This document shows positions 9,119-36,785 of a DNA stretch of 64,000 bases, piece by piece. The first letter of the stretch is position 1; each line of letters starts with the position of its first letter. The notes below the pieces were generated by a model that searched no databases, was not told where the DNA came from, and worked only from the letters and a program-made list of their open reading frames with translations. Position numbers and translations under genes: made by a program. The stretch covers positions 976,695 through 1,040,694 of the forward strand of contig NW_002060947.1 in the NCBI RefSeq assembly GCF_000150275.1, read 5' to 3'. This DNA is from Trichoplax adhaerens (taxonomy: Eukaryota; Animalia; Placozoa).

Positions 9119-10597
9119 ATGATTGGATTGCAGCTATCAACATCGCAAATCTTATTAATATCAGGTACAATTTTTGCCTGGTTTTTTTATAAGGCTTATA
9201 TTAAACCTAAACGTTGCTTGAAAAATTTGGGCATAAGAGGTCCCCCTCCTAAACCCATATTGGGTAACTTGTTGGATTGTAAACCGGCTTTGCAACATAT
9301 AGCTCAAATAGAAAGGCAAGAAAAATACGGTTATGTATATGGCACTTTATTTTTTTCCATACCAACCATATGGATTGGCGATGTAGATATATTAAAATCA
9401 GTTTTAATCAAAGATTTCCCCAATTTTACCAACCATTTCGGTATCGCTAGTAACTTAGAACCGTTTAATAAGGCGTTATTAGAATTGAAAGATAGCGATT
9501 GGAAGCGAGTAAGAACTATTTTAGTACCAACATTCAGCGTATCACAGATAAAGGAAAATTTTTCCTTTGTTGACAAGGCTGGTGAAGGAATTGTTGCATT
9601 GCTCTTAAAGGCAGAGAAAGAAGGTGATTCGATTGATTTACGAAAGGTTTGTGGCAATTTTTCAATGGAAATTCTTCTTGCTACTGCCGCTGGAATGGAA
9701 TTTGAGTCGAAAGAACAAGAAAAGAAATTAACTGCAGCTGCTAGTCAGGTATCTAGTGGTGCAGCCGGTCTAATGCAGTTATTATTACTATTTGCAACAC
9801 CACTATTTCGTATCTTAGAGCCACTATCTGGTGGGCAATTTATGAACTCGTTACATTATTTAACCGATACTTGCAGAAAAGTAATCAAAGAAAGGAGGGA
9901 AAAAATGGCTGCAGGCATTGCATGTCGTAGAGATCTAATGCAACAGATGATCGAAGCTGGTGATAGCGATAAATTAGACGACAATGAAGTTGTCGCTCAG
10001 GCTGTGATCTTTCTTGTAGGAGGTTACGAAACTACAGCAAATACTTTAGCATTCGCTACCTACTTATTGGCAACAAACCCTGAAGTACAGAATCGATTAT
10101 ATAATGAAATAAAAACAAAACTTAGCGATGCTGATCCATTAGATTATGATCGTGTAGCAGACTTACCCTATTTAGAAATGGTAATATTGGAAACATTAAG
10201 AATATATCCACCCGCTTTTAGACTTACTCGGGCATGCAAAAATAATACTACAATTGATGGTCATCAGATCTCAAAAGAGGCTATGATTGCTGTTCCTGTC
10301 TATGCTATTCATCATGACCCTAAATTATGGCCTAATCCAGAACAGTTTATTCCTGAACGCTTTGCGCCGGAAGAGAAATCCAAGCGTGCAGCTTGTGCAT
10401 ACCTTCCATTTGGTATGGGACCACGAAATTGCCTCGGAATGAAATTTGCTTTGCTGAAGATTAAATTAGCTCTTGTGAAAGTGTTACAAAGTGTCGAATT
10501 AACTGTTACTGAGAAAACAGATGTTCCTTTACCAATAAAGTGTGGTATAACTATGGCTCCAGCTAATGGAGTACACCTAGGCTGTAAAAGAAGATAG
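9119..10597 (+). CDS. Cytochrome P450, clan 3 (CYP3-like), intronless (CYP-A)
   Basis: N-terminal TM anchor, proline-rich GPPPKP, WKRVR, I-helix GGYETT, ETLR, PERF and heme motif FGMGPRNCLG. First ATG at 9119. Confidence 0.95.
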   Translation: MIGLQLSTSQILLISGTIFAWFFYKAYIKPKRCLKNLGIRGPPPKPILGNLLDCKPALQHIAQIERQEKYGYVYGTLFFSIPTIWIGDVDILKSVLIKDFPNFTNHFGIASNLEPFNKALLELKDSDWKRVRTILVPTFSVSQIKENFSFVDKAGEGIVALLLKAEKEGDSIDLRKVCGNFSMEILLATAAGMEFESKEQEKKLTAAASQVSSGAAGLMQLLLLFATPLFRILEPLSGGQFMNSLHYLTDTCRKVIKERREKMAAGIACRRDLMQQMIEAGDSDKLDDNEVVAQAVIFLVGGYETTANTLAFATYLLATNPEVQNRLYNEIKTKLSDADPLDYDRVADLPYLEMVILETLRIYPPAFRLTRACKNNTTIDGHQISKEAMIAVPVYAIHHDPKLWPNPEQFIPERFAPEEKSKRAACAYLPFGMGPRNCLGMKFALLKIKLALVKVLQSVELTVTEKTDVPLPIKCGITMAPANGVHLGCKRR

Positions 10598-12834
10598 AGT
10601 AAAATAAAATTTAGCTATATCTGATAATGAATATGTAGTTGTCGCGAAGTGGCATTTGCTAAGTAATGCTTATCTTATTTTCGTTAGATAATATACTTTG
10701 GTATTTGTTGAGAATACCGTTATCTATGATATTATACATTCTTTCATAGATCAATGCGTACCATATAGCTTTACAATATTATCTAAGTACTAATTAAATT
10801 GATAATTACGATTAACGCTTATGTAGACTAAATACGCATTGGCTGAGATTGTAATAAACTTTGAGCTTAGTTGTGCCTGTATGCCTAAGAGAGACTTGCG
10901 GTGTTACTGTAAATACTGACGATCTTCTATCGTCAGCATTTAGAGTCTCACTTACTGTAGATGTCGGTGAAGACAAACCTGATATTTAGACTTGCAGTAT
11001 TTAGTTTCTAGTTTTAATGTATGTTTTCCCGGTTACATCTTTGTGATTTATAACTGTAGCGTTGGGTCATATTGGTTTACGAATGTTAAACTCAGCTAAG
11101 TTGGCAATAATAACCTCTTTATCCTTAAATTACATGATTATTGTTTACTACCGGTAGTTTAGAGACCAGCTATTAAATAAGTTGTAGATATTAGAAAAGA
11201 TAAATACGATATTAGGTACAAGTTTATCTATAGTAAGGTGAATTGATTGACAAAATCTATTATAATTATAATTCTAGTAGTATAAACCGGCTTTTCATAA
11301 ATCCAAGACATATGCTAGCTATAGGTTTTTCTTATAAACTTATAAAAAATTACTCTAAATCTCTGAAAAATGGATTTATCTTGGTTTTCAAATCCATTTT
11401 GACTATTATTATTTTGCTAATTTTACTTGCGTTTTAAAGTTCCAAAATTACTATCGCTGGCTCAATTTAATATAAGCCATCAATCATCGTCGCTGCATGC
11501 AAATAGGTGATTATGAAACCATATTCCTTATGCATACCGTAAAAGTGCATTATAGCATACACTGGATGGTTTGCTCGACCGCCAATGATTAAATTAGCTT
11601 CGTACAAGAATTAGCGAATGGCTACAGTCTAATCTGTATTTACAGCTGCATGTTAATGTTTCATAATCCCATTAAGTTCTAGTCGAAGTAGTGATGGACA
11701 TCAGAAGCCAAGTACTGTATCAATGGAAAGATGCGCGTAAAATAATTTATATAACAATTTTGCTTTTCGTTGTGCATATTCAATTTATTATTCATCATTG
11801 AGGGTCGAGTAGACTTTACGGCACATTCTATACTATTATGAACTGTGTAGAAAATATTATTCAACTTTAGTCTACTTGTTTGCCTTTAGTTCAATTGATA
11901 ATCTATAATTAATTAACATGCATATGTAATGAATTGAGTGAGTAAACCGGAAATTACGAGTAATTTCCAATATAACCTTAGCGAGCTACATCTAACATTT
12001 CAAAATCACTTATCACTTCTTCCAGGGCTCGCTCCATTAATGGTAAGCCATCAACTACTACTGCTATCACTGCGTGCAAATGGATCGAAATTGAACGACA
12101 TTCACTACTGTATGTATGTTATACCAGTGCATTATGTACAATAAAGTTTCTCAGTAGTCGTTAACGAATAAATTAAACTCGCAAAATTATAATGCAAGGC
12201 TAAATAATATACAATGTCTCTTTAATTGGCATTGTTTATTTTTGTTATTGAAATTTTCTTGTAATAGTAATTGAATTTTTACTAATTCTGTTACGTCGAC
12301 AACTGTGTGATGTTATATAGTAAATTACTGTAGAACCCACGCAAGTGCTTTACATAATGTTATTGAGTTTATAGACATTAACGTATTCACGACGTTATTT
12401 AGCGGCATGTTTGGTTAAGCACTACTAGCAAGTAGAAAATGACTCTAGTGACTCGAAAAAGTTGTGTACTTCTATAGTTAATAGTTATGATAGCTTGTAG
12501 AACTACGACACTTATTATTTATATAGTCCGTTAAAAAAAAACGTTGAATTTTGTTGACGTGGTTCATCAACAAAATTGATTTGGCTTTTTTTACTATCTC
12601 TTGGCTTACGAAACATTCCATCATTGATAAACTGTTATCGTTATTGTCTTGAAGGTTGATTTTAGAAATACAGACAAGAGTTAAGGTGTGTGAATATCAC
12701 ATCGAGAACCCAGAGATAATTAAATTTTCCATTTGATTTATATCTATATCCATTATAGCTATAAAATTAATTATCCGTTTGATTTAATCGGATATATCAA
12801 ATTGAAACGATTTTGTACACGAGATTATAACAAC

Positions 12835-14310
12835 ATGAACTGGATTCCATCGGCTTCGCAGATAGTACAGCTTATTATAGTTGGTCTAGTTTGGTATTTG
12901 TACAAATCATGGATTAGACCTTATCGTCTGTTGAAGAAGTTAGGCCTGAAAGTTCCATTTCCTAAACCTATTTTTGGTAACTTGTTGGATTGTCATCCTT
13001 CTATACAACATCTTGGTCAGTTAAAAAATCAAGAAAAATACGGTCGTGTTTATGGTAGTCTCTTTTTCTCTATACCTACTATATTGATTGGCGAACCGGA
13101 TCTTTTAAAATCGGTTTGTGTTAAGGATTTTTCCAATTTTTCCGATCGCTATCCTTTAGTCGACGGTATAGAGCCATTTGATAAAACATTACTAGAACTT
13201 AAAGGTACCGATTGGAAACGTGTCAGGAATATCTTATTGCCTACGTTTAGTGCTTCAAAATTAAAGGCGATTATGCCCTTTATTGATAGAGCTGGAGATC
13301 GTCTAGTTGCAACGATACTTAAAGCAGACGAAGAAGGTCAATCTATCGATTTATGGAGAACTTGTGGTAAATTTACTATGGAAGTGATTCTAGCAACTGC
13401 ATTCGGTATAGAATTCGAATCTAAAGAGCAAGAAAAAAAGTTAACTAATGCTGCCAGAGCCCTATTTGATACTTCACCTGGCCCCTTACAATTCTTACTG
13501 ATATTTGCACCGCCCTTATTTCGTGTATTAGAACCGAAATTAGGAGGTCAATTTATGAATTCCACACATTATTTAATGAAAACTTGTAAACAAGTAATCA
13601 AAGAAAGAAGAAGAAACATGGCCGAAGGTATAGCCTGTCGTAGAGATATTTTACAACAGATGTTGGAAGCTGGCGATAGCGACAAGTTAAACGATCAGGA
13701 GGTTGTTTCCCAAGCATTAATATTTCTTGCAGCAGGTTACGAAACTACAGCAAATACACTAGCATTCGCAACCCACTCGTTAGCAACAAATCCTGAGATA
13801 CAACAACGAGTCTTTGACGAAATAAGTGACAAATTGAGCGAGAATGATTCGCTGGATTACGATAGTGTAGGCGATTTACCGTATTTAGAAATGGTAATCG
13901 CTGAAACATTAAGAATGTATCCACCTATTTTTTTAGCCAATCGTTCTATAAAAGAAGATATGGAAATTGATGGTCTTCAAGTCTCAAAAGAGGCTATGAT
14001 TGGCATCCCTGTTTACGCAATTCATCATAATCCTAAAATTTGGCCTGAACCAGAACAATTTAGACCGGAGCGATTTACATCCGAAGAGAAATCGAAACGT
14101 GATCCATGTACCTATCTTCCATTTGGTAATGGGCCACGCAATTGCATCGGAATGAGATTAGCCATGTTAGAAGTTAAATTAGCTATAGTTAAAATTTTAC
14201 AAAAGGTAGAATTAATTGTAACTAAAGAGACAGATGTACCGTTACAATTAAAATGCGGTTCTACCTTGTCTCCAGCTAATGGTGTATACGTAGGCTTTAG
14301 GAAGAGATAG
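12835..14310 (+). CDS. Cytochrome P450, clan 3, intronless (CYP-B)
   Basis: AGYETT, ETLR, PERF and FGNGPRNCIG. The ATG at 12835 (MNWIPS) matches the start of its paralog at 36785. Confidence 0.95.
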   Translation: MNWIPSASQIVQLIIVGLVWYLYKSWIRPYRLLKKLGLKVPFPKPIFGNLLDCHPSIQHLGQLKNQEKYGRVYGSLFFSIPTILIGEPDLLKSVCVKDFSNFSDRYPLVDGIEPFDKTLLELKGTDWKRVRNILLPTFSASKLKAIMPFIDRAGDRLVATILKADEEGQSIDLWRTCGKFTMEVILATAFGIEFESKEQEKKLTNAARALFDTSPGPLQFLLIFAPPLFRVLEPKLGGQFMNSTHYLMKTCKQVIKERRRNMAEGIACRRDILQQMLEAGDSDKLNDQEVVSQALIFLAAGYETTANTLAFATHSLATNPEIQQRVFDEISDKLSENDSLDYDSVGDLPYLEMVIAETLRMYPPIFLANRSIKEDMEIDGLQVSKEAMIGIPVYAIHHNPKIWPEPEQFRPERFTSEEKSKRDPCTYLPFGNGPRNCIGMRLAMLEVKLAIVKILQKVELIVTKETDVPLQLKCGSTLSPANGVYVGFRKR

Positions 14311-16072
14311 ACGATTAGCATGTTACTAGCTATGAGTCTATACTAGCTACGTATTTCGTCTAAAAAAATTATTACGATCCTACATGTCTTTAGTGATACA
14401 TATCGTTTACGTTAACTTTATCATTCCATCGTTGTCTAATTGAAAGATGTTGTAGCACCTTGAATCAATTAGACATGTAATATCTTGGAGGCTAATTTAT
14501 AAATGGCGTTTAGATTGATTAACCTGTGTTATAACAGTTATCGTATATACCTATTATTATAATTGTGCTCCCTTTTTCATATTTTTAACGTCGTATTTAT
14601 TTACTTAATTACGACGCATGGACTGATATCTATGAATGATAGGCGGATCGAAGGTAGAGTTTATCTCTAAATTAATGCTGAATTGAGTTTCTAAATTATC
14701 AAGTTACGATGACATTGATAATTTATTAATTAATTTACTTCCCTACAAAATAAGCATTTTTCTGAGTAATAATAAGTACATTAAAGAATTACTACAGCTT
14801 GTTCTTGTTACTTATTATTTGTTCTATCATGATATACATCATGGAATAATTTCTACACGAAGCCAATGTCGACTTCTAGTTCTATAAGAAATGATAATGA
14901 TCAAGAATAAATCAAGCTACAGTATTACACTCTGATTTTTTCCTTCGGCTACAGGATTGTTAGACTATTTGAATTTTTCGAATGGGCGGATATGGATGCC
15001 ATTTTCCAGAAGAAAATACAACATAGCCAGCTAGATTTAGCATAGTCAGCGATTATTTACGGCTTGCAAATAAATGCTTACAAGCTTTTTTTTTAATCCT
15101 ATTGCTGCTCACTGTAGAGATTAGTAATAATTGATGCTTGAAAAAATATATAAAGTCACTCAGCGTATGGTCATTTATTTTTATATTTACTGATTCATCA
15201 GTCTCAATCTCTACTTTTAAGGTTGTCGCAATATGATTCTGTAAAGCCGTAACTTATCATTCAGTATTGCATACCTTGTACTCTATGTGGATCAATAATA
15301 ATCAATTTATCAGTCAGAATGAAATATACTAATCAGAGTGAATCGATGATAGGCCAATTATTGTTCAGTTGCGTTATGTCTCTAAATTAGATTTTAGTAA
15401 CTTTAGTGGGATTGCTGTCTAGCTGTTGATGCTGGTCGTTATTAAAATATTGAACTATTGCATGCAGCCTTAATATCTTCGTATTCTATACCAACTTGCT
15501 CAATGAATGCTTACCTTCTCATTGCATCGCGGTAATTATTTTTTTGCTGGCTAGAAAGTAATGAAATGATGCATGCCACTCCATGCAATACTACTTCTGT
15601 TCACCGATAATGTTCATGATGTTATGCGCTACGCCATCGTCGAATTTTACACGGTTTAGCAGCACCGTATAATGTTGCTGTACACGGCCTTAAGCGAAAT
15701 TATCGACGTGGCAGATTGGATCATGAATTGAATTTAGGATTGTTGATATTGGTATCCATTCTTTGCTTATTTTTCCCTACCAACGGACTGTAATTAGCCA
15801 TTGCTCATACTTTATATATTATCATCGAAGCGATCAATTTGTTGGCCAATGTATTATTTTGTTAATTTATCTACATATATTTACATGTCGATGTTTTAGA
15901 ATCACTTTAGACGGTAAGCATTGCGGGCTCTTCAATGGCAAGCTAATCATTGCTTTAATAGCAAGCAAATAGAAAGTCATTGAATAATATTCTCTACGAC
16001 TATCATAAATGGGCAACGTATACTACAGGGTCTACTTAGCCATCATTCGGACTAATCAATATATTCATTATA

Positions 16073-17000
16073 AGAATTAATTAATCAATACAGTACTGTG
16101 TATTGTATCGTAGGATAAAGCGATGGTATCGCCTAGCGAAGCTTTTGCAGTGGATTGTGCAGTATTTCACGATATAAGGAGTGTTCCTAAGTGATGTCAT
16201 GGTTTGATAGCGCATACCAATTTATACTTCATGGTTAATGCTATTCTACTATCATCACTACTCAAATGAGAAGGAATGACAACATTTTAGAATTAACACA
16301 CTGCATCGTAGGATCGACCGATCGTATCGACTCGTAATGCTTTTGCAGTTGATCGTTGATAATTTGATACTACACACTGTTTTGTTTTAGTGAGTGTTCC
16401 TAAGTAAAGTCATAGCATCGTAGCGCATACAAATGTAGAGGACTATTATAATTATTATCACCGTCATAGTCGATATTACTCTACTATCATCGCCGTTCCA
16501 ATGAGGAATGAGAACATTTTAGAATTAATTAATCAATACAGTACTGTGTATTGCATCGTAGGATAAACCGATGGCATCGCTTGGCGAAGCTTTTTGCAGT
16601 GGATTGTGCTGTGTGTTTCATGATATAGGAGTGTTCCTAAGTGATGTCATGTGTTCCTAAGTAATGTCATAGCATCATAGCGCATACAAATGTAGAGGAC
16701 TATTCTAATTATTATTATCGCCGTCGTAGTCGATATTACTCTACTATCATCGCCGTTCCAATGAGGAATGAGAACATTTTAGAAATTAATTAATCAATAC
16801 AGTACTGTGTATTGCATCGTAGGATAAACCGATGGCATCGCCTGGCGAAGCTTTTTGCAGTGGATTGTGCGGTGTGTTTTATGATATAAGGAGTGTTCGT
16901 AAGTGATGTCATGGCTTAATAGCACACACCAATTTATACGTCATAGTCGATACTATTCTACTATCATCACTGCTCCAAATGAGGGATGACATCATTTTGC
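16073..17000. repeat. Four-unit diverged tandem repeat (~215-260 bp units)
   Basis: aattaattaatcaatacagtactgtgtattg..cgtaggataaa recurs at ~16075, 16523 and 16784, with a variant at ~16290. Blocks gtgttcctaagt and ctactatcatc are shared. Confidence 0.85.
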
Positions 17001-20300: not shown

Positions 20301-21402
20301 TGATTTGTCATCCGGTTTCTATTTCTGTAGTCTATTCAAGATTTCATTAGTTCTAATTACGGTGTTATATATCGCCTTTGGAATGTGTGGCTACTTGGTG
20401 AGTTTTGTCAATTTTTCATTCACAATATTTTTCGCTCTGAGTAAATATAAGAGCATGTATTATTAAGCAATTTTCGCTAGTCTAATAACTCGTTTGTTTT
20501 ATATTTCAGTCCTTTGGACCTGCTACAAACAATATTATAACGTTAAATCTACCACCTGGTATATTTTCTATACAAAAATGCTTATCTTATTTTATGTCCA
20601 ATTACTCTTAATGTTCTAATTACTATAGGTGTGATGCCCTTAACCGTCAAAATATGCCTGTGCTTCGCTCTATTTTTCACTTACCCAAGTAAGAAGTGTA
20701 ATATTTGCCAATGGCGTAGTTACTTTGTACTAACGGTCCAAATTTAAATATTTTCCTTAGTGATGATGTTTCCTGTTATCCACATCTTGGAAGAAAAATT
20801 CCTAATCCGTAATAATTCTACTAGCGCTGGGGTAATGAAAGCGTGCAGTGATAATATAAATTATCAGTAATATCTACATTTGAAAGTATAAAGGAAAATT
20901 AGTGCTAACATTTTTTTTTGCGTGGATGTCAATTTCCCTACGTGCAGCTTCTACTTCGCGCCGGAACGGTATTGCTGACTGGAGTAATTGTCCTTGCTAT
21001 TCCAAATTTTTCCACGTTGATGGCACTAGTTGGGTCATGCTGTTGTACATTGCTAGCATTTATTTTGCCTGGATGGTTTCACCTTTGTATATTTCGTGGG
21101 TAAGGAGTACTATATTACTGCAAGGTTGTCCTAATTCTGAGATTATTACTCTTTAAATCCGATTTACAAAACAATAACTTGTTTCATTAGTGAATTGACT
21201 AAAACTCAGGAGGTATTAGACTATGGGCTAATCGTGATTGGATTCATTGGGTAAGTTTAGATTCATTTGAGATGATGCATATAAATGCCACTTATCCTAT
21301 TTGTCAAGCTAATAAGTTATGGAAATACTTTTATACTTATTTCACAGAACGATTATAGGTACGAAGGACGCTTTGGGAAGACTGATGACGTCGGCACACT
21401 AG
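17319..21402 (+). CDS. Aa_trans-family amino-acid transporter (AVT3/ANT1/SLC36-like), ~15 exons
   Basis: Spliced: MAHIDDGARSSFKIFANIFISFIGSGILALPYAFKE|AG...SYGDLG...SQTGFGCAYLIFI...FFLGISIYCYEGAGMIL...FTYP.MMFPV...IPNFSTLMALVGS...RLMTSAH* (TAG at 21400-21402). Confidence 0.9.
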
Positions 21403-22178: not shown

Positions 22179-24755
22179 TTAGTTAAATAAATGCTTTCTC
22201 GCTGCATTCAGGACTTTCTTTTCAAATGCTGGCATTTCAATTGGTGTTCCAATGTCATAGAAAGGATTCATTAGGACCTTCAATAAAAATGAGAGTAGTG
22301 CAATGGATTCATTCTTAATGACAGGTCTACGACAAATGGTAATACTATCTGTTAAATGAGCACATTATCGTAAACCGTCAGCAAAGCGACGGGAGTTTGC
22401 ACTAGTAATTATAATATTTATCTACATGCAAAACTGCGATCTGAGTACTACTGTCCATCAGTAGCAGTAAACTAATGCAGCTAATGAATGTAGTACCAAG
22501 TATACGCATATAGCTAATATCAACTTGGTGTAACAACTCAACTAAACGGATACTTTCATACCTTTACAAAGAGTTCGTAAACTTCACCAAAAAAATTCTT
22601 GATGCCATCCTCGTTTTTAGCGTCATGTAAAACAATAAATCTAGCACCTAAAAATGTGTTAAGGTAATTGCTCAAACCAGACAATCATTCCATTTACGGT
22701 CCAAAAAAACTGTTCTTAAAACTTTATGCTACAATACTGTATGTTCTAAAATGCTCTAAAGCTATTTCCTTCTTTGGCATTTATGAATACAAAATCTTTT
22801 AACAAGTATGAAACAGGCCAAGTGCTTGCAAATTGAACCACTATGATAGCAATATCTTGGCATGATACTCAAAATTGGCCTACAGCAGTATAAGCATGAG
22901 ATTAGAGTTCTTCTAAGAATGTCATGAAATTATCCATTTCTTATTAGATTAACAGTAGGTCGTCAAAGCAAGGTTACATAAGTACGGCAATTATATGCTT
23001 AGCTATAACTGAAATGACTTCGCCAGTTGACTAAGACGCGGTAAAGAGATAGTATTAAAGCCGTTATCCGAGACTATCGTAATGCTAGTTTATAAAATCA
23101 AACAATTTCTATGCTTAGTTTAAAAGGATATCACCAGCGGTAACCAAGGCAGAAACTAGCCATTCATTGAACTTATCTATAACCTTTAAATACCTAAATG
23201 GATAGATGCAATTACATTACTTCAATTTCATTCTCCATAGGAGGAATTTATACCTCCGTTAATAATATTATAATCAATTTATGTGATAATATGTGTGTTA
23301 TCGATAGATACTGTAGAGATGATTGTCAGCAAAATGATCAATATTATCAATCCAGGAAAAAGTATCAAGTGTCTTAACTCTACAGCATTATTTAAGGTGA
23401 ATGCCGTCATCTGTTAGATGCAACATCAGCAACTATCGAATTTATAACATAATCTAAGTAGACTGATATGGCATTATTGAATTACTAGAGGCTATACAGT
23501 ATCATCATCTATTGATGCATTTGAAGAGCTTGTAACCAAATTAATGCGAGTACAACATTAATTAATTATCGAATAGTGGAAGGCCATCATTTAATAGTAG
23601 AAAAGTAACTGGAGAACTGGTAGCGCAATTAATATATAACAATATTGAATGGAGATTACATCGTCATGTACTAGTAGATACGTAACTGTATACGGGTAGC
23701 TTATCATCTTAACGACCCTTGATTAGAAGAATCAATTAAAACTCTGTTACAGGTTAATCGATTCATCATATGACTGTAGCAGACTATTAAGACAATCTAG
23801 GATGGATATTAATTTCCTATGCCTACTCAAATAGCAATAACTTTTACTTACATGGAATTAGTATTCCACATCACCTCATCGACGATATCCAGTGACGAAT
23901 GGACTATAAACTGATTTAAATGCTTATGATCTTCTCTCTTTTAGCCGTGATGAAAAAAGGACAAAGTTTCATCATAAGATACATTGCTAAAATTGTTTAT
24001 AGGTGCATTATGAAAAGAAAAATAAAATGGTTGTGCACTTAATAAGAACAAAGTACTAATAATAGCTCTATGCACTGATCCTATTTTCGGTTTACAAACT
24101 GACTCTACGTATACAAGTAGACGATAGATCCAATCAATGTTGATTATAAAACTTGCATCTAAAAAATGAATGCTTTCACGATACCACTTGTGATCACGTA
24201 GGAGACAGACTTGTCTTGCTTTCATGTAAAATTGTAGATTGCTACTACTGTTGTATCCATATACTACCAGAGGATGTAGTACTCTACTGTACATTAAAAC
24301 TAGTAGCTAGCAATATCCGTGCTATTGCTTTAAGATGGATATCGACTGAAAATAAAGTTTTTACAGACTCTCTATTCAATCCATCTACCATTTCAACTAG
24401 GGTTCATTTTAAAAATATCATTTCATGGTGTATATTGATTGACAGTATGGCTACTTTCGAAAATCTCTATCAAGAGAAGACACTTGTACAACGTTTAAAA
24501 AAGCCATTCTAAGCGTACGAATCGATTGAATCGTTGAAAAATAAATTTGGGGATAGGATTTGCTTCCATTTTATTAACCGAGGTCTAACGATAGACGATT
24601 GCCATCTCCTCTCTGCAAGGCTTGCAACTTACTTTATTAGCATTCTGCTCTCGTGATCCACCAATAACATCGCCACCTTTAGTAGCCGACAATTCAATCT
24701 CAAAGAGTGGATTGTCATGGCGTCCAACAATTGCCAAGTAATACTGATTGGTCAT
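22179..24755 (-). CDS. TRAPPC2: Trafficking protein particle complex subunit 2 (sedlin); exons 24755-24633, ~23937-23852, ~23193-23132, 22647-22562, ~22277-22179
   Basis: [82 protein letters not shown] matches the sedlin/Trs20 signature. Confidence 0.95.
22648..23131 (-). other. U12-type (minor spliceosome) intron with AT-AG termini in TRAPPC2
   Basis: Donor ATATCCTTTT (23131-23122), branch site TTACCTTAAC (22667-22658), and AG acceptor 10 nt downstream. The reading frame is preserved. Confidence 0.8.
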
Positions 24756-25261
24756 AGTCTGCAAGATTTTCCTTAATGCTAAGCTGTCGAATGAAGGAAG
24801 GATGAAAGACTACAAGAAGCTCAAGAGCATCCAGTAAATGGATTAATTGCAATCGATGTCCAATTCTGCCTCTTCCAATATGCTCCTAGGTTGTCTTTTA
24901 ACTACGAGTCGATCGCATACGGATCGATTACATTTTAGGTCTGTCACGGGTAGTACACTAAGTCAAGCTATGGATAATCTTGCACCAACAACTTCCCCTA
25001 AAACGCTCTCTCCTCCTCTTATACTGTACGCTATATGGTGTTGTATTTAGGGACAAATCCCTATACAAAGACACTACAGTATTGGAAAGTCCGGCATACC
25101 AGTCGGAGGACTAGCAAGGATTTTTGAAATCTTGCATGCAGGTTTGACTTCTTCTCCATGCACATTAATGCTCCAATCTTGCAAAATGGGAAAGATTGTC
25201 ATGATAATACTCTAATTTAAGCGATATACAGTACAAGCAATGTGGAATAGCTTCAGATTTG

Positions 25262-26176
25262 AATGGATTTCCTTTATTCATGCTACTGGAATGCAATAGA
25301 CAAGTAAGCAATGTCTGATAGCTTCCCCTTCCAATAGGTTGATTCCCTTTGCTAACCATGATGGCAATCAAGCAGGCCTACAAGAAAGGCTTGATAGATT
25401 GGCTGCTTGAGATTGAAATAGATTGCCTCTTTTAACTTAGGATGATCTCATTGACACACAAGAAATGACTGATACTGTCGCTTTCAATGGATTCCCTTTA
25501 TTCATGATACTGGAATGCAATAGACAAGTAAGCAATGTCTGATAGCTTCCCCTTCCAATAGGTTGATTCCCTTTGCTAACCATGATGGCAATCAAGCAGG
25601 CCTACAAGAAAGGCTTGATAGATTGGCTGCTTGAGATTGAAATAGATTGCCTCTTTTAACTTAGGATGATCTCATTGACACACAAGAAATGACTGATACT
25701 GTCGCTTTCAATGGATTCCCTTTATTCATGATACTGGAATGCAATAGACAAGTAAGCAATGTCTGATAGCTTCCCGTTGCAATGGGTTGATTCCCTTTGC
25801 TAACCATGATGGCAATCAAGCAGGCCTACAAGAAAGGCTTGATAGATTGGCTGCTTGAGATTGAAATAGATTGCTTCTTTTAACTTAGGATGATCTAATT
25901 GACACACAAGAAATGACTAATGCTGTCGCTTTCAATGGATTCCCTTTATTCATGATACTGGAATGCAATAGACAAGTAAGCAATGTCTGATAGCTTCCCG
26001 TTGCAATGGGTTGATTCCCTTTGCTAACCATGATGGCAATCAAGCAGGCCTACAAGAAAGGCTTGATAGATTGACTGCTTGAGATTTAGATAGATTGCTT
26101 CTTTTAACTTAGGATGATCTCATTGGCACTCAAGAAATGACTAATGCTGTCGCTTTCAATGGATTCCCTTTATTCA
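25262..26176. repeat. 224-bp tandem repeat, 4 copies plus a partial
   Basis: aatggatt.cctttattca recurs at 25262, 25486, 25710, 25934 and 26158 (exact 224-bp period). Confidence 0.95.
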
Positions 26177-26910: not shown

Positions 26911-28868
26911 ATGAAGGCCCGGACATTGATAGCTGGCTTCATTGGTATAACAGCCATCATCATAGCTTATGTAATGCTCAAACCTGAAAAGGAAGTGATT
27001 GTCAAGGCCAAGAAGAATCCTTGGTGGTCGGCAACACCACCACAGCAAGCCAATAACGATACAAGTATTCGACCATTTAAAGTTCATGTCGAGCAAAACG
27101 TATTGGATGATTTAAAAGCGAGATTGAATAATATTCGCACTTATCGTTCAATGCCTGGTTGGGATTATGGCACTCAGAGCCAATATCTCTTACCTATCAT
27201 CGAGTACTGGAAAAATGAGTATGATTGGAGAAAACAAGAAAAGATACTCAACAGCTTTGATCATTTTAAAACCAACATGTATGGTATCGATATCCACTTT
27301 ATCCATGCCAAGCCTAAAAGTGATGTTCAAACTAATTCTCTACCGGTCAAGGTAGTTTTATTAATTCATGGTTGGCCTGGATCTGTTTTCGAATTTTACA
27401 AAGCGATACCTATGTTAACCAAGCAAGGATACACTGTTGTTGCGCCTTCATTACCTGGTTATGGTTTCTCCGATGCACCAGAAGTATCAGGATTAGGTCC
27501 TGTCGAAACTGCCAGTATCTTTGCTAAACTAATGAATCGATTAGGTTACGAAAAATATTACGTTCAAGGCGGCGACTGGGGTGCAGCTATAGCTAGTGAT
27601 ATAGCAAAAATCGACACAAGGTTAAAAAGGAATATTGTAGTTCGATAGCCAAATATAATACTCCAGCTTAACATGGAACTGTTGCAATTTGCTCATTTCG
27701 TCACCTATTGTCATATCCTAGGCACTGTCGTGGAATCCACATTAATCTTATTGTAGCACAGTCACCCAATCCAATATATACTTATGGTGTAGGCAGTATT
27801 TTCCCTTCTTTGGTGTTTCCCGGTAACAACTAACAGTGATTATTAAATTTAAAGTCCTGAAATGGATATTTCTCGATGCTATCATCTACCGTCTATCCAT
27901 AAATTGAGATATAAAATAACAGTTGTAATTTCCAAGGAAATAACTCTAGGCTGCATGCAATAATACTGATCTTTTTTGCTTGATGTGATACTGCACATGT
28001 TGCAAATGCATATCACTCGTACCTTGCATAAATCAGTAATCTTACCAAAATGTATGAGCGTAGTATTCATGAGCATTTATGGTCTTTTCTGACGTTATAG
28101 ATCCAGAGGAAAGGAAGCGCCATCTGCCAGTTCTAGATCGTGCTTTGGATCTATTGCATGAAGCTAGTTACTTTATGATACAAAGTACTAGACCAGATAC
28201 ACCTGGATTTGCTCTTAATGACTCTCCTACAGGATTAGCTGCGTGGATCTTGGAAAAATTTGTTCGTTGGTCTGGTTGTGCCTTCGAAGAAGACTATACA
28301 GCCTGCATGGAAAAGAAATTTACAAAAGATGAGTTAATTACTAATGTCATGATTTACTGGGTAACTCAGAGTATAACGACTTCAATGAGATACTACAAAG
28401 AGTACTTTGCTAATGATATGGAAGCAAGAAAGTAAGTTAATTTAGCTGACTCATTAGTCATCTAAGCGTATGATAACAAATAATGAAATGAATAAGTGAT
28501 ACTTGAAAAATTCTTTAGTAATTTATGAATCATTATTAATTAAAATAGATCACGCTGTAAACCATTCATGTTTACTCATGAAAACTTATCCATATTTTAC
28601 TCATCAAAATTAATTTATCCATTGTTTCAGAGCGAAAGTTTTAATCCCTACAGGTATAGCTGATTTTCCATATGAATTGGTCCGGCCACCTCTTTCATGG
28701 ATTAAGCACCTATTCAAGCAAGTTATTACGTATAACTCTATGCCTGAGGGAGGCCATTTTGCTGCTTTAGAAAGGCCAAACTTGCTAGTACCAGATTTTA
28801 TTAATTTCGTGACTAAAACTGAAGAACTATATGCGCAGGACAAAATAGAAATACCACAAGCAAACTGA
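26911..28868 (+). CDS. EPHX1: Microsomal epoxide hydrolase (EPHX1/JHEH family), copy 1; exons 26911-27620, 27722-27822, 28101-28431, 28631-28868
   Basis: N-terminal TM, EHN domain (IRPF..YW...YDWR), HGWP oxyanion motif, GGDWG nucleophile, lid tyrosines (EASYF, SMRYY), FPYEL acid and GGHFAALE histidine. Confidence 0.95.
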
Positions 28869-30314: not shown

Positions 30315-31556
30315 CCCGAACTCGACTCCTAACCTTAAACACTTTACAAGTCTACCTCGTAAATTGACCATTCGGTCTACATATACATAATTGAGATAAT
30401 ATAATAGTGCTGTATATAGAGAGAGACACTGTATACAATATATACCCGAACTCGATCCATAATCTTAAACACTTCACAAGTCTACCTCGTAAATTGACCA
30501 TTTAGTCTACATATACATAATTGAGATAATATAATCGTACTGTACTGTATATAGAGAGGGAGACTGTATACTATATATAACTGAACTCGACCCTAATCTT
30601 AAACACTTTACAAGTTTATCCCATAAATTGACCATTCAGTATACATATGCATAATTGAGATAATATAATACTGTCGTACTGCAAAGAGAGCGAGAGACTG
30701 TACAGTACACAATATATACCTGAACTTGACGCTAATCTTAAACACTTTACAAGTCTATCCCGTGAATTGACCATTCAGTCTACGTATATGTAATTGAGAT
30801 CATACAATGGTACTGCATGGAGAGAGAGAGACTATATACAATATATACCCGAACTCAATCCCTAATCTTAAATACTTTTCAAGTCTATCTCGTAAATTGA
30901 CCATTTAGTCTACATACACATAATTGAGATAATATAATAGTACTGTATAGAGAGAGAGAGAGAGACTGTATATAATCTATACCCGTAAATTGGCCATTTA
31001 GTCTACATATACATAATTAAGATAATATAGCAGTAATGTATAGAGAGAGAGAGAGGGAGAGAGAGACTGTATATAAGATATACCCATAAATTGACCATTT
31101 AGCCTACATATACATAATTGAGATAATATAACAGTACTGTACTGTATAGTGAGAGAGAGAGAGAGAGAGAGACTGTATATAATATATACCCGTAAATTGA
31201 TCATTTAGTCTACATATACATAATTGAGATAATATAACAGTACTGTACTGTACTGTATAGAGAGAGAGAGAGACTGTATATAATCTATATCCGTAAATTG
31301 ACCATTTAGTCTACATAATACTGTACATAATTGAGATAATATAACAGTACTGTATAGAGAGAGAGAGAGACTGCCTATAATATATACCCGTAAATTGACC
31401 ATTTAGTCTACATATATATAAGTGAGATAATATACTGTACTGTATAGAGAGAGAGAGAGACTGTATATAATATATACCCGTAAATTAATCATTTAGTCTA
31501 CATATACATAATTGAGATAATATAATAGTACTGTATAGAGAGGGAAAGACTGTATA
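30315..31556. repeat. Tandem array (~80-125 bp units, ~13 copies) with embedded (GA)n microsatellites
   Basis: Unit core gtaaattgaccatttagtctacatatacataattgagataatata...gtactgtata(ga)nctgtata repeats throughout. Confidence 0.9.
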
Positions 31557-31920: not shown

Positions 31921-33855
31921 ATGAAGACTTGGGAATGGGCTACTGGTTTAGTTGGGAGTGAAACGATAGCTACTTTATCTTCTGTCTCGCCGTGGCAATG
32001 GGCTGCTGGCTTAATTGGCGGTACAACAGCCGCCGCCATAGCTTATATATCGCTCAAGCCTGAAAAGGTAGTGATTATTAAGGCCAAGGAGAATCCTTGG
32101 TGGTCGGCAACACCACCAGAACTAGCCAATTTCGATACAAGTATTCGACCATTCACAGTTTATGTCGAGCAAGATGTATTGGATGATTTAAAAGCGAGAT
32201 TGAATAATATTCGCAATTATCGTTCAATGCCTGGTTGGGATTATGGCACTCAGAGCCAATATCTCTTACCTATCATCGAGTACTGGAAAAATGAGTATGA
32301 TTGGAGAAAACAAGAAAAGATACTCAACAGCTTTGATCAATTTAAAACCAACATTAGTGGTCTCGATATCCACTTTATCCATGCCAAGCCTAAAAGTGAT
32401 GCTCAAACTAATTCTCTACCGGTCAAGGTAGTTTTATTAATTCATGGTTGGCCTGGATCTGTTTTCGAATTTCACAAAGCGATACCTATGTTAAACGAGC
32501 AAGGATACACTGTTGTTGCGCCTTCATTACCTGGCTTTGGCTTTTCCGATGCACCAGAAGTATCAGGATTAGGTCCTATCGAAACCGCCAGCATCTTTGC
32601 TAAACTGATAAATCGACTAGGATACGAAAAATATTACGTTCAAGGCGGCGACTGGGGTGCAGCTATAGCTAGTGATATAGCAAAAATCGACACTAGGTTA
32701 GAAAGAACAAAAATACCATGGTCGATAGTTGAACTTATGCCCTAGCTTAACCAAGAATTACATTTTGCTTATTTATTGTCTTATGACCTGTAGGCACTGT
32801 CGTGGAATACACATTAATTTTGTTACCACCATGGCCCCCAATCCAATTTATACTTATGGTGTCGGCAGTATTTTCCCTTCTTGGGTGTTTCCAGGTAGGA
32901 ACAACTATTTCTTTATGGCATCTTACGATCTACTACACCCATCCATGGCATCACATAGATAGCAGTTCAATTTCTAAGAAAATAGCTCTATATTGCATAG
33001 AATATTATTCCAATTTTTACTTTCTGTCGTGTTTGCAGTCAATATAATCTTCCGGGGGGTACCCTTATGTCATCAGTTATTTTACTATAATGTATGAGCA
33101 TAGTATCCATTTGCATTCATGATCATTACTTACGTTTTAGATCCAGAGGAAAGGAAGCGCCATCTACCGGTTTTAGCCCGCATAATGGATTTTGTTCATG
33201 AAGCTAGTTACTTTATTATACAAAGTACTAGACCAGATACACCAGGCTTCGCACTTAACGACTCTCCTATAGGATTAGCTGCGTGGATCTTGGAAAAATT
33301 TGTTCGTTGGTCTGGCTGCGCCTACGAAGAAGACTATACGGCTTGCATGGAAGAGAAATTTACAAGAGACGAGTTAATTACCAATATCATGATCTACTGG
33401 GTAACGCAGAGTATTATGACTTCGATGCGATTTTATAAAGAGTGTCTCGTTAATGATATGGATGCAGGAAAGTAAGTTAGCTTATCCTATCGATCCGTCA
33501 TCCAAGTAGAGGATGATGAAATCATTGTACTACTATAACTTAAAGGAACAGGTTAAGCGCTAAACTAGAGATATTTTACTAATTAACAGTACCCATCCAT
33601 TGTTTCAGAGCCGAAGTTCTACTCCCTGTAGGCATAGCTGATTTTCCGTATGAAATGGCCAGGCCACCTCGTCGATGGGTCCGCCACCAATACAAGCAAA
33701 TTATTACCTACAACACTATGCCTGACGGAGGCCATTTTGCTGCTTTGGAAAAGCCAAACTTGCTTATACCAGATTTTCTGCAGTTCGTGGCTAAAACTGA
33801 AGAATTATATGCTCAGAAAAAAATAAATATACCACCAGCAGTTGATCCCATGTAA
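31921..33855 (+). CDS. EPHX1: Microsomal epoxide hydrolase, copy 2; exons 31921-32696, 32794-32894, 33141-33471, 33609-33855
   Basis: Same motifs (HGWP, GGDWG, EASYF, SMRFY, FPYEM, GGHFAALE) and the same intron positions as copy 1. Confidence 0.95.
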
Positions 33856-34457
33856 CATTGCAAAATAGATACTACTTTTGTCACATTTAGCTAGTAAAAT
33901 TAGATAAACTGAATAGCATTTATAAAATAGCAGATTATCACTTTTCTTTTGATTCAATATTGATCATGGTGATGTTTGAAATTTTCTTATTTATACTTAG
34001 TAAAGTCCAGTAGCAGTAGAGTAACATTATAGGTAAAATGAATCATAGCAAGATAACGTCTCAGGTATCCACTTTTTTTTAGTAAAGAAACCAGGTGTTA
34101 GCACCAATAGTCTTCATCATACCTGTTGGCTTACTCTCATGCTCTGTCAGTTTTATCGCTAATTTCCAAGATTGCAATGTTTTTAGCACTCGCACAACAC
34201 TTTGGATAGAACCAATGCACTACCAACTGTGGTACTGTTTTTGTTGAGTGAAAATATGTATTTTAAATTGCAGACAGCTTACCGTTAGCGATAGATTACT
34301 ATCTGACGCAATAAGAATTTGTTTGTGCAAGAAAAAATTGTATTTTGATAACTCATTTTATTGGCAATAAAGATAAAATTTGGTTAAAGTCATTTTGTGA
34401 TGACAATGATATGTGTACTGGCATTATCGACGATCATCACAGAGCAATACTGCTATA

Positions 34458-34895
34458 ATACTCAGTAGGCTAATTCATTGTTCATGCAAGAGAGCTATGC
34501 AAGTAATTTGCACGTTTTAAGGCAAAATGCAAAGCCGAATGATATTGCAATAGCCGATGTAGTAAAATTATATTATACTTGGCCATCACTCTATTTCAGC
34601 TTTATACTCAGTAGGCTAACTCATTGTTCATGCAAGAGAGCTATGCAAGTAATTTGCACGTTTTAAGGCAAAATGCAAAGCCGAATGATATTGCAATAGC
34701 CGATGTAGCAAAATTATATTATACTTGACTATCACTCTATTTCAGCTTTATACTCAGTAGGCTAACTCATTGTTCATGCAAGAGAGCTATGCAAGTAATT
34801 TGCACGTTCTAAGGCAAAGTGTAAAGCCGAATGATATTGCAATAGCCGGTGTAGTAAAATTATATTATACTTGACTATCACTCTATTTCAGCTTT
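34458..34895. repeat. 146-bp tandem repeat, 3 copies
   Basis: ctcagtaggctaa.tcattgttcatgcaagagagc at 34461, 34607 and 34753. Confidence 0.95.
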
Positions 34896-35309
34896 AAACT
34901 ACGATTGGTAGTAACTATGCTAAATTTAGCCAGTAGATTCGCAAAAATAAATGATAGAGGCTAGTTAGAAGGATCAAATGAAAAAACAAGTTGACAATAA
35001 GTTGATTTCTATTTAATATAGTGGTAAGTTGAAGTTTAAAATGATGGTGAAAAAAATTTCAATAATATATGTATGATATCTATGGTAATATGAGTTAAGC
35101 AATCTACGCACCTTCATAGTCTAACCTCTCAAGAAATGTGTATCGAATTTATTGATGGTGCTACAATATTATAAAACTAGACAACGATGGAGTAGCAAAA
35201 ATAAATTTAAATGCTACATACAACACTAAAGTCTTCTAGAATTGCAACGGTGTTTTCATCAGCCAAACGCTTAAATAGTATAGCCTGATAGCATTAACAT
35301 GCTAATTGT

Positions 35310-36785
35310 CTATCTCTTCCTAAAGCCTACGTGTACACCATTAGCGGGAGACAAGGTAGTACCGCATTTTAATTGTATCGGTACATCCGTCTCTTTAGTT
35401 ACAATTAATTCTACCTTTTGTAAAATTTTAACTATAGCTAATTTAACTTCTACCATGGCTAATCTCATTCCGATGCAATTGCGTGGCCCATTACCAAATG
35501 GAAGATAGGTACATGGATCACGTTTCGATTTCTCTTCGGATGTAAATCGCTCCGGTCTAAATTGTTCTGGTTCAGGCCAAATTTTAGGATCATGATGAAT
35601 TGCGTAAACAGGGATGCCAATCATAGCCTCTTTTGAGACTTGAAGACCATCAATTTCCATATCTTCTTTTATATCGCGATTGAAATGGAAAACAGGCGGA
35701 TACATTCTTAATGTTTCAGCGATTACCATTTCTAAATACGGTAAATCGCCTACACTATCGTAATCTACTGAATCAGTTTCGCTCAATTTGTCGCTTATTT
35801 CGTCAAAGACTCGTTGTTGTATCTCAGGATTTGTTGCTAACGAGTGGGTTGCAAATGCTAGTGCATTTGCTGTAGTTTCGTAACCTGCTCCAAGAAATAA
35901 TAATGCTTGAGCAACAACCTCCTTATCGTTTAACTTGTCGCTATCGCCAGCTTCCAACATTTGTTGTAAAATATCTCTACGACAGGCTATACCTTGGGCC
36001 ATGTTTCTTCTTCTTTCTTTGATTACTTGTTTACAAGTTTTCACAAGATAATGTGTGGAATTCATAAATTGACCTCCTAATTTCGGTTCTAATACACGAA
36101 ATAAGGACGGTGCAAATATCAGTAAGAATTGTAAGGGGCCAGGAGAAATTTCAAACAGGCCTCTGGCAGCATTAGTTAACTTTTCTTCATGCTCTTTCGA
36201 TTCGAATTCTATACCGAATGCAGTTGCTAGAATCACTTCCATAGTAAATTTACCACAAGTTCTCCATAAATCGATCGATTGACCGTCTTGCTCTGCTTTC
36301 AGTATCGTTGCAACTAGGCGATCTCCAGCTTTATCAATAAAGGGCATAATCGCCTTTAATTTTGAAGCACTAAACGTAGGCAATAAGATATTCCGGATAC
36401 GTTTCCAATCGGTGCCTTTAAGTTCGAGCAACATTTCACCAAAAGGCTCAATACCATTTACCAAAGAATAGCGATCGGAAAAATTAGAAAAATTCTTAAT
36501 ACAAACCGATTTTAAAAGATTGGGTTCGCTCACCCATATAGCAGGTATAGAGAAAAAGAGACCACCATAAACACGACCGTATTTTTCTTGATTTTTTAAC
36601 TGACCAAGATGTTGTACGGCAGGGTGATAATCCATTAGGTTACCAACAATAGGTTTAGGAAATGGAACTTTCAGGCCTAACTTCCTCAACAGACGATAAG
36701 GTCTAATCCATGATTTGTACAAGTACCAAGCTAGACCAACTAGAACAAGTTGTAGTATCTGCGATGTCGAAGGTATCCAGTTCAT
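35310..36785 (-). CDS. Cytochrome P450, clan 3, intronless (CYP-C); inverted paralog of CYP-B
   Basis: 491-aa ORF with all P450 motifs, collinear with and highly similar to 12835-14310. Confidence 0.95.
   Translation of the reverse strand: MNWIPSTSQILQLVLVGLAWYLYKSWIRPYRLLRKLGLKVPFPKPIVGNLMDYHPAVQHLGQLKNQEKYGRVYGGLFFSIPAIWVSEPNLLKSVCIKNFSNFSDRYSLVNGIEPFGEMLLELKGTDWKRIRNILLPTFSASKLKAIMPFIDKAGDRLVATILKAEQDGQSIDLWRTCGKFTMEVILATAFGIEFESKEHEEKLTNAARGLFEISPGPLQFLLIFAPSLFRVLEPKLGGQFMNSTHYLVKTCKQVIKERRRNMAQGIACRRDILQQMLEAGDSDKLNDKEVVAQALLFLGAGYETTANALAFATHSLATNPEIQQRVFDEISDKLSETDSVDYDSVGDLPYLEMVIAETLRMYPPVFHFNRDIKEDMEIDGLQVSKEAMIGIPVYAIHHDPKIWPEPEQFRPERFTSEEKSKRDPCTYLPFGNGPRNCIGMRLAMVEVKLAIVKILQKVELIVTKETDVPIQLKCGTTLSPANGVHVGFRKR

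Follow-up and report, generated by a model that had tools for sequence, protein, structure and literature searches.

The P450 (CYP) and microsomal epoxide hydrolase (EH) genes that lie together in a 64,000-nucleotide stretch of the Trichoplax adhaerens genome (the window) are best read as an inherited, conserved gene neighbourhood enlarged by local gene birth, to which we give a probability of about 0.6, and not as a demonstrated pathway cluster. What keeps them linked is most likely ordinary retention of microsynteny together with a setting prone to duplication, rather than selection for co-inheritance or co-regulation. A preliminary description had proposed a clustered epoxidation-hydrolysis pathway at 9119-36785; the physical pair is borne out and ancestral (retained in Trichoplax sp. 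H2 and on contig L074), but nothing tested supports a selected cluster. The features, in window coordinates, are:

9119-10597, plus strand: CYP-A, intronless clan-3 (CYP3-like) P450, 492 aa, Pfam p450 E 8e-98
12756-14564: left arm of an inverted duplication, comprising CYP-B together with 79 bp on its 5′ side and 254 bp on its 3′ side
12835-14310, plus strand: CYP-B, intronless clan-3 P450, 491 aa, Pfam p450 E 5e-105
20918-21103, plus strand: Aa_trans exon of an amino-acid permease gene, Pfam Aa_trans E 1.2e-11, genome scan match 20942-21097
22529-24755, minus strand: TRAPPC2 (sedlin), Sedlin_N matches at 22529-22657 and 23833-23952, head-to-head with EH1
24648-24755, minus strand: TRAPPC2 exon 1, 81% aa identity to the start of contig L006
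26911-28868, plus strand: EH1, four-exon EPHX1/JHEH-type microsomal epoxide hydrolase (exons approximately 26911-27620, 27718-27822, 28100-28431, 28620-28868), EHN E 3e-32 plus Abhydrolase_1
31921-33855, plus strand: EH2, four-exon EPHX1/JHEH-type hydrolase, EHN E 1e-32 plus Abhydrolase_1
33856-35309: EH2/CYP-C spacer, 1454 bp, in which a 146-bp unit is repeated three times in tandem (34458-34900)
35310-36785, minus strand: CYP-C, intronless clan-3 P450, 491 aa, Pfam p450 E 4e-103
37318-38129: ~100-bp tandem repeat upstream of CYP-C (TRF), carrying the motif AGGTCAAAGTTTG

The three intact clan-3 CYPs and two intact EPHX1-type hydrolases of the preliminary description were all found in place. 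Each CYP is a single, intact ORF with a full-length Pfam p450 match (PF00067; 329, 353 and 346 bits for CYP-A, -B and -C, where the curated cut-off is 22.8) that spans positions 2-455 of the 462-position profile. Using FxxGxRxCxG, I-helix (A/G)GxxT and K-helix ExxR as P450 motifs, we find the heme-thiolate loop FG(N/M)GPRNC(I/L)G, I-helix (A/G)GYETT and K-helix ETLR in all three, lined up with those of CYP3A4; the Cys motif was also confirmed by regular expression. An N-terminal signal anchor with a proline hinge is visible in the sequences. Among solved structures, the closest are CYP3A4, 3A5 and 3A7 (E 1e-89 to 2e-92, the latter for CYP-B against CYP3A4), followed by CYP46/CYP4 (1e-41), and the named non-placozoan matches are CYP3A-like or thromboxane synthase. 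Scores against other families thus place the window CYPs in clan 3, while their identity of 34-37% to mollusc and pig CYP3A-type matches is below the 40% aa identity to a named member that defines the CYP3 family, so that they would be clan-3 members outside CYP3. The labels “P450 3A11” and “3A24” in Trichoplax sp. H2 appear to be automated best-hit names. Family knowledge predicts that the products are monooxygenases anchored in the ER and dependent on a reductase, acting on lipophilic compounds of dietary or endogenous origin.

As a unit, the “island” was wrongly delimited. At least 57 full-length, single-ORF, intronless CYPs occur genome-wide, 22 of them in a 0.5-Mb part of the window's scaffold (C1410), with one array just upstream of the window (932-966 kb) and further ones at 882-891 kb and 1180-1198 kb. 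The window CYPs are the tail of a ~14-CYP array inside this 22-CYP, 0.5-Mb bloom. In a genome-wide CYP tree, they are nested in a 22-gene clade located almost wholly on this scaffold. CYP-B and CYP-C are sisters (support 100), and CYP-A (63% and 62% aa identity to CYP-B and CYP-C) is sister to a CYP on another scaffold (C1391:456k). The CYP-A protein has an identical entry in the public collection and a 90% cluster mate in Trichoplax sp. H2 (RDD39473.1); the cluster mate of CYP-C is RDD39464.1, from the same strain.

Domain and structure matching of EH1 and EH2 was run exon by exon. In both genes, EHN (PF06441) and Abhydrolase_1 (PF00561) fall in the exon 1 ORF, and exons 3 and 4, as well as exon 1 of EH1, match Bombyx JHEH (4QLA; the closest solved relative, E 1.6e-50) and other epoxide hydrolases including 4I19. 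The catalytic set sought comprised an HGXP oxyanion motif, the nucleophilic Asp of GGDWG, two Tyr residues, and a His plus its acidic partner. Both genes carry HGWPGS, GGDWG, the Tyr of SYF(M/I)IQSTRPDT, the Tyr of MR(Y/F)YKE, FPYE and GGHFAA, aligned to the equivalent JHEH motifs. Read from the sequence, a hydrophobic stretch of ~19 residues directly follows the start of EH1 and a longer one that of EH2, whose N-terminus is the longer of the two; the Trichoplax sp. H2 orthologs have 459 and 484 aa, respectively. By family knowledge, EH1 and EH2 would be ER-anchored alpha/beta-hydrolases (Asp nucleophile, His/acid relay, two Tyr) that convert epoxides to diols in the membrane that the CYPs also occupy. 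Purifying selection acts on all five CYP and EH genes, each of them intact: dN/dS is 0.17-0.52 for the paralogs and 0.17-0.42 for the orthologs of H1 and H2.

As had been noted from the sequence, each family has local duplicates. Self-BLAST aligns 12756-14564 with 36866-35055 in inverted orientation (89% nt over 1821 bp), and EH1 (26932-28862) with EH2 (32005-33840) as tandem copies (82% nt). Between the hydrolase copies, exon 1 has a dS of 0.16 and exon 3 one of 0.55 (dN/dS 0.17-0.52). The short divergence of CYP-B and CYP-C (89% aa identity, dS 0.139, dN/dS 0.38), their inverted arrangement and the shortness of the flanks they have in common would fit a recent accident in which a copy of CYP-B came by chance to lie beside EH2. 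Against this, identity in the non-coding flanks is 81% (5′) and 72% (3′), a divergence of 19-28% that exceeds the coding dS, and so suggests that gene conversion has lowered the apparent age of the pair. The accident is also at odds with L074, a metagenome contig of 4.1 kb that comes from a divergent placozoan (lineage Y), on which an ortholog of the B/C ancestor already converges on a hydrolase gene; we consider it very improbable, and for the position of CYP-C the L074 ortholog rules it out.

L074 carries the C-terminal 255 aa of a CYP on the plus strand (67% to CYP-B, 65% to CYP-C) and hydrolase exons 4 and 3 on the minus strand (65-73% identical). In the tree, this CYP is the sister of CYP-B and CYP-C (support 93), and CYP-A and C1391:456k fall outside. 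It is the ortholog of the CYP-B/C ancestor, and its convergence on a hydrolase shows that the CYP-hydrolase pair is ancestral and that the EH1/EH2 and CYP-B/C duplications both took place in the Trichoplax lineage. Linkage in relatives, which the preliminary description had named as a check, is retained in Trichoplax sp. H2, where the pair is also convergent, and in L074, and so is not absent within the phylum. On a second contig from a divergent placozoan (L006), TRAPPC2 exon 1 lies head-to-head with a hydrolase gene, 1.6 kb upstream of it.

The ancestral block comprised TRAPPC2 (minus), one microsomal hydrolase gene (plus) and one clan-3 CYP (minus, convergent); the block now lies at the edge of the bloom, whose 22 intronless clan-3 CYPs occupy 0.5 Mb. 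In the Trichoplax lineage, tandem duplication of the hydrolase gene gave EH1, which retains the ancestral 5′ neighbour TRAPPC2, and EH2, which retains the ancestral 3′ neighbour CYP-C. The CYP also duplicated, CYP-C remaining by the hydrolase in the ancestral convergent position, and CYP-B, probably the derived copy, now lying inverted 22 kb away, adjoining its older paralog CYP-A. Two observations sit less easily with the conserved-neighbourhood reading: the pair has outlasted divergence to ~65-70% protein identity, and the presence of a microsomal hydrolase locus 1.5 kb or less from a CYP carries, taken alone, a nominal P of ~0.01. Both partners duplicated in one lineage, with a similar non-coding divergence of ~29%, which could reflect joint selection on dosage.

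A possible but doubtful alternative is a selected two-step module, in which lipophilic compounds, either endogenous or from an algal or bacterial diet, are epoxidised by the CYP and the resulting epoxides opened by the adjoining ER hydrolase. Linkage would be kept by a common regulatory domain or by co-inheritance of co-adapted alleles, and the parallel duplications, with their similar non-coding divergence, would increase the dosage of the two steps together. Retention of the convergent pair in H2, and on one contig (L074) of a divergent lineage, is consistent with this, as are the putative N-terminal membrane anchors of both products and the presence of other defence-type families near CYP arrays. 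Placozoan genera, however, have 73.6% gene collinearity and 33.8 genes per syntenic block (PMC6067683), and retention is weak evidence for selection because the baseline collinearity is already ~74%.

The arrangement of the locus bears on the same alternative. CYP-C converges on the second hydrolase copy as first described, with the stop codons 1454 bp apart, an orientation that provides no common promoter, and a comparison of sequences upstream of the CYPs and of the hydrolases found no common promoter element, motif or similarity. The orthologous spacer in lineage Y is ~2.7 kb, and a colinear 670-bp stretch of it is common to lineages X and Y (60-bp core at 82%), a point in favour of a module; in the window spacer, no similarity to this stretch, its core included, was detected. 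The block contains or is flanked by unrelated genes (Aa_trans, TRAPPC2, Arm-repeat, mitochondrial-type S21 and PGM), two of which separate CYP-A and CYP-B from the hydrolases. TRAPPC2, previously set aside as a likely bystander, is confirmed by its Sedlin_N matches, and the “transporter” of the preliminary description is present as an Aa_trans exon (the H2 ortholog is annotated PF01490) but belongs to an amino-acid permease, not a xenobiotic pump.

Chance adjacency was gauged from the genome fraction near CYPs, with 0.36% lying within 2 kb of any CYP match and 0.6% within 5 kb. The probability that one of two independent hydrolase loci would be so close to a CYP is ~0.007-0.012, a nominal value for a post hoc observation. 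This low value favours a module, and its post hoc nature counts against it, as do the ~50 sister CYPs and the third hydrolase paralog that have no such partner. The genome has only three EHN loci, and no CYP lies within 10 kb of the third. Nor was a CYP found within 10 kb of the microsomal hydrolase genes of Daphnia magna and Asterias rubens.

We consider it improbable that the two enzymes form an endogenous signalling pair that makes and inactivates an epoxy-lipid or terpenoid signal, comparable to epoxyeicosanoid or juvenile-hormone turnover. The pair is older than the Trichoplax bloom, and the nearest solved hydrolase relative is an insect juvenile-hormone epoxide hydrolase, but JHEH and EPHX1 are one family and the 4QLA match says nothing for a hormone role. 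The repeated motif upstream of CYP-C is nuclear-receptor-like, which would favour signalling. AGGTCAAAGTTTG has nine matches in the window, eight at 37254-38045 and the ninth at 10855-10867, with none of the nine upstream of EH1 or EH2. The CYP, moreover, sits in a fast-duplicating lineage-specific bloom, a pattern of detoxification-type and not of biosynthetic P450s, and constraint is modest, with CYP and EH orthologs 65-70% identical between placozoan lineages and dN/dS up to 0.4-0.5.

The placozoan CYPs resemble vertebrate CYP3A4/5/7 in the p450 fold, signal anchor and proline hinge, AGYETT, ETLR and an FGxGPRNCIG pattern identical to that of CYP3A4, whose E-value is ~50 orders of magnitude below that of the next family, and in their tandem-array, birth-and-death behaviour. 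They differ in being only ~34-39% identical to named non-placozoan CYP3A-type and thromboxane-synthase proteins, and in forming an intronless, apparently placozoan-specific bloom of at least 57 genes. EH1 and EH2 have the EHN domain, HGWP, GGDWG, two epoxide-polarising Tyr and GGHF His of EPHX1 and insect JHEH, and may also share their N-terminal anchor; insect JHEH genes are also found as tandem duplicates. In mammals, EPHX1 and the CYP3A cluster are on different chromosomes; CYP and microsomal hydrolase act in the same membrane in vertebrate liver, although the gene families are unlinked. In the ~106-Mb placozoan genome, by contrast, one of three paralogs is 1.45 kb from a clan-3 CYP.

Fungal, plant and bacterial clusters of P450 and epoxide hydrolase genes likewise place non-homologous enzymes for potentially consecutive reactions side by side. 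In those clusters, co-regulation and a common product are the defining features, whereas the placozoan block has housekeeping genes inside it and consists of detoxification-type families. By adjacency, EH2/CYP-C resembles a metabolic gene cluster, and consecutive chemistry is plausible from family knowledge.

Nematode chromosome arms carry CYP/UGT/GST “defensome” arrays, where fast-duplicating families pile up in duplication-prone regions. The placozoan block is similar in that families are adjacent without a pathway operon, and differs in that a specific CYP-hydrolase pair, whose enzymes could catalyse consecutive steps, is conserved across divergent lineages. Among blocks of the a-priori partner families EH, GST, UGT and SULT, 1/31 is within 5 kb of a CYP (expected 0.19, P ~0.17); with acyl-adenylating genes added, the count is 3/39 (expected 0.23, P 0.0017). 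One GST array is 10 kb from two CYPs. Together, the three nearby blocks and this array hint that chemical-defence genes may co-locate non-randomly in the Trichoplax genome.

Three intact clan-3 P450 genes and two intact microsomal epoxide hydrolase (mEH) genes of the EPHX1 type had been read from the window, and both sets hold up on closer analysis. Each P450 is a single ORF with a full-length match to the Pfam p450 family, and both hydrolases keep the HGWP, GGDWG, FPYE and GGHF motifs and both tyrosines.

P450 and epoxide hydrolase genes of the window
9119-10597, plus strand, CYP-A, single ORF with full-length Pfam p450 match
12835-14310, plus strand, CYP-B, single ORF with full-length Pfam p450 match
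26911-28868, plus strand, EH1, four exons
31921-33855, plus strand, EH2, four exons
35310-36785, minus strand, CYP-C, single ORF with full-length Pfam p450 match

The heme-cysteine loop, the I-helix threonine motif and ExxR were found in CYP-A, CYP-B and CYP-C; among solved proteins they match CYP3A4, 3A5 and 3A7 best (E ~1e-92; next family, 1e-41). Because they are only 34-39% identical to named non-placozoan proteins of CYP3A type, under the 40% rule, we class them as clan-3 members and not as CYP3 family. All three proteins have exact matches in the public protein collection, two of the three with 90% cluster mates from Trichoplax sp. H2, and further paralogs encoded on that 8.57-Mb contig bear T. 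adhaerens locus tags, which marks the genome as this species or a near-identical strain. Hydrolase searches were run exon by exon, with no joined protein as query. Exon 1 of EH1 and EH2 comprises the hydrolase N-terminal domain (EHN) and Abhydrolase_1 and aligns to Bombyx JHEH (4QLA, E 1.6e-50), and exons 3 and 4 likewise align to the epoxide hydrolase family. A hydrophobic N-terminal stretch in both looks like a putative membrane anchor, and the P450s and hydrolases would work in the ER membrane, by analogy with family members elsewhere. A genome-wide scan found only three EHN loci; the third (C1414:1331k, 48-55% identical to EH1/EH2) has no CYP inside 10 kb.

The "transporter" that had been counted with these genes is Aa_trans, an amino-acid permease. 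TRAPPC2 is a minus-strand gene in head-to-head orientation with EH1, and the genes flanking the block encode Arm-repeat, mitochondrial-type ribosomal S21, phosphoglucomutase, BIR and ankyrin proteins, none of them of defence type. Around the hydrolases and CYP-C, each intergenic spacer carries its own tandem repeat array, mutually unrelated and of 80-97% identity.

Tandem repeats in the window
16394-16913, period 261 bp
25258-26176, period 224 bp
30315-31556, period about 100-130 bp
34458-34900, period 146 bp
37310-38114, period about 100 bp

Self-comparison of the window bore out the local duplication of both families and resolved it into two separate events. CYP-B (12756-14564) and CYP-C (36866-35055) form an inverted pair of 89% nucleotide identity, and EH1 (26932-28862) and EH2 (32005-33840) a tandem pair of 82%. 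A duplicated unit of one hydrolase plus one CYP was rejected, as a sensitive tblastn search gave no CYP relic between EH1 and EH2. Synonymous divergence is 0.139 between CYP-B and CYP-C; for EH1 against EH2 it rises from 0.16 in exon 1 to 0.55 in exon 3 (27598-28435 vs 32674-33475). All dN/dS values are below 0.55, and therefore every CYP and EH copy is under purifying selection. Identity in the non-coding portions is about 70-81% for each of the two duplicated units. These sequence comparisons suggest that the two duplications are broadly alike in age and that gene conversion homogenised the coding region of the CYPs and exon 1 of the hydrolases; in the tandem hydrolase pair, from the exon 1 and exon 3 dS values, it seems restricted to the 5′ portion. 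The 1.8-kb CYP-B/CYP-C inverted repeats bracket a 20.5-kb segment with Aa_trans, TRAPPC2, EH1 and EH2. They could mediate its inversion; its orientation is identical in T. adhaerens and Trichoplax sp. H2.

A p450 scan of the whole genome (105.6 Mb, 1414 contigs, roughly 33-39% G+C) recovered at least 57 full-length single-ORF CYPs, together with multi-exon CYP fragments. All 57 are uninterrupted ORFs, the other matches being short exon-sized pieces of multi-exon genes, and this bloom may descend from one intronless founder, perhaps retrocopied. On C1410, the scaffold that holds the window, an array of ten intact and one broken CYP (932-970 kb) ends 7 kb ahead of the window, and more arrays occupy 882-891 kb and 1180-1198 kb. 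The broken gene (C1410:968536-969883, 7-8 kb before the window) appears as two matches split by an internal TGA. In a quick tree of 56 bloom proteins, CYP-B and CYP-C are sisters, and CYP-A, CYP-B and CYP-C form a clade with one C1391 CYP (support 100) that nests in a 22-gene clade located nearly entirely at C1410:0.79-1.29 Mb. The preliminary description had set the window's P450 and hydrolase genes apart as a metabolic island. That gene set is real, but its delimitation is wrong: given the array and the position of the three P450s in the 22-gene clade, the "island" is the tail of a far larger, lineage-specific CYP bloom. Some CYPs on tiny contigs are near-identical to CYPs on large scaffolds (tree branch lengths 0-0.012). 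Uncollapsed haplotypes or redundancy in the assembly probably account for these copies, and the CYP count is slightly inflated as a result.

Near-identical CYP pairs
C994:748-2073 and C1404:1961443-1962765
C1189:6737-8035 and C1411:495248-496549

Linkage of CYP and EH in relatives, proposed as a check on the island, is present in Trichoplax sp. H2 and on a single contig of a more distant lineage. Gene order and orientation in H2 are the same as in the window; its dS from T. adhaerens is only 0.01-0.02, so that this synteny says little. Two divergent placozoan-like lineages are known from short metagenome/Logan contigs: X (L003-L005, L065-L067, L072, L073) and Y (L006, L007, L068, L074). Their hydrolases are 66-73% identical to EH1/EH2 and their CYPs 64-67% identical to CYP-B/C. 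Taken singly, the short contigs L003, L065 and L068 carry no information on synteny. The L003 tail, 3′ of the X hydrolase, is colinear with the reverse complement of the L068 tail, 3′ of the Y CYP (179 bits vs ≤31 for controls). This spacer similarity spans 670 colinear bp with a 60-bp core at 82% (L003:4302-4940, L068:2431-3074) and, judging from the alignment, could represent a conserved regulatory element or 3′ UTR; the core was undetectable in the window and the rest of the Trichoplax genome. A look-up of a small ORF in the contig tail led to L074, a single 4102-bp contig of Y on which the two genes lie about 2.7 kb apart: the plus strand encodes the C-terminal 255 aa of a CYP, the minus strand hydrolase exons 4 and 3. 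On L006, also of Y, TRAPPC2 exon 1 sits 1.6 kb upstream of the hydrolase gene, head-to-head. In the CYP subtree the X and Y genes are sister to CYP-B plus CYP-C (support 93), with CYP-A outside. From L074, L006 and the CYP tree it follows that the ancestral block consisted of TRAPPC2, a single hydrolase gene and a single convergent CYP. The EH1/EH2 and CYP-B/C duplications are thus Trichoplax-lineage events, with CYP-C at the ancestral position. A CYP-C that was a young copy recently dropped beside EH2 is ruled out by L074 and the CYP tree.

The CYP/hydrolase linkage is thus physically real and old within Placozoa. For T. adhaerens and Hoilungia, Eitel et al. (PMC6067683) report a mean gene collinearity of 73.6% and 33.8 genes per syntenic block, so that a neighbour pair is kept by default. 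Beyond Placozoa, in Daphnia magna and Asterias rubens, no CYP lies inside 10 kb of the mEH genes.

We also asked how far the adjacency exceeds chance. The share of the genome inside 2 kb of any CYP match is 0.36%, and inside 5 kb it is 0.6%, which gives the CYP-hydrolase adjacency a nominal, post hoc P of about 0.007-0.012 for two independent hydrolase loci. Among the a-priori partner families EH, GST, UGT and SULT, 1 of 31 blocks lies ≤5 kb from a CYP (expected 0.19, P about 0.17). When acyl-adenylating genes are added beyond the a-priori families, 3 of 39 blocks are near a CYP (P 0.0017), and the two acyl-adenylating adjacencies are probably products of one segmental duplication. At two C1410 sites the distance between these AMP-binding genes and a CYP array is 3-4.5 kb, and another lies 30 kb from a third array.

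AMP-binding genes near CYP arrays
C1410:902343-928947
C1410:1201850-1203067
C1404:1997082

The CYPs at 1193k and 1197k cluster in the tree with those at 882-889k, and the block of CYPs and acyl-adenylating gene may have been segmentally duplicated. A GST array of about six genes and two intronless CYPs are separated by 10 kb (C1375:112101-121668 and 131510-135681). Non-random co-location of defence-type families in this genome is hinted at, not proven, and caution is needed, as neighbours of the kind "P450 plus plausible partner" are to be expected here.

As to regulation, CYP-C and EH2 are convergent and so share no promoter. Apart from one site with one mismatch after CYP-A, a DR1-like motif (AGGTCAAAGTTTG) is confined to the repeat upstream of CYP-C, and it is absent upstream of EH1 and EH2. 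Comparison of 1-kb upstream regions of CYPs and hydrolases by blastn-short gave chance matches of 11-13 bp only, and in a weak survey of 56 CYP upstream flanks (median usable sequence 174 bp) no k-mer was common to more than 10.

The pathway-cluster inference is thus unsupported by what could be tested, and a selected epoxidation-hydrolysis module is an unlikely account of the locus. The best reading, with a probability of roughly 60%, is a conserved neighbourhood with local gene birth at the edge of the P450 bloom. Two points are established: the clan-3 P450s of placozoans include a very large bloom of intronless genes, and one bloom CYP has stood beside an mEH gene since before distant placozoan lineages diverged, both having later duplicated in Trichoplax. 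A literature search returned no paper on placozoan P450-hydrolase linkage or on placozoan P450 cell-type expression.

We consider it quite doubtful that the convergent CYP/mEH pair is an ancient, selectively maintained two-step placozoan module (epoxidation followed by hydrolysis), co-amplified in Trichoplax and belonging to a wider tendency of chemical-defence genes to co-locate non-randomly in this small genome (CYP arrays with acyl-adenylating genes, the GST array, hydrolases). Animals rarely have functional metabolic gene clusters, and such a module, if true, would be one of the few animal cases. A conserved P450-epoxide hydrolase module in so simple an animal, among the simplest there are, would then inform our picture of how early-branching metazoans organise and regulate chemical defence.
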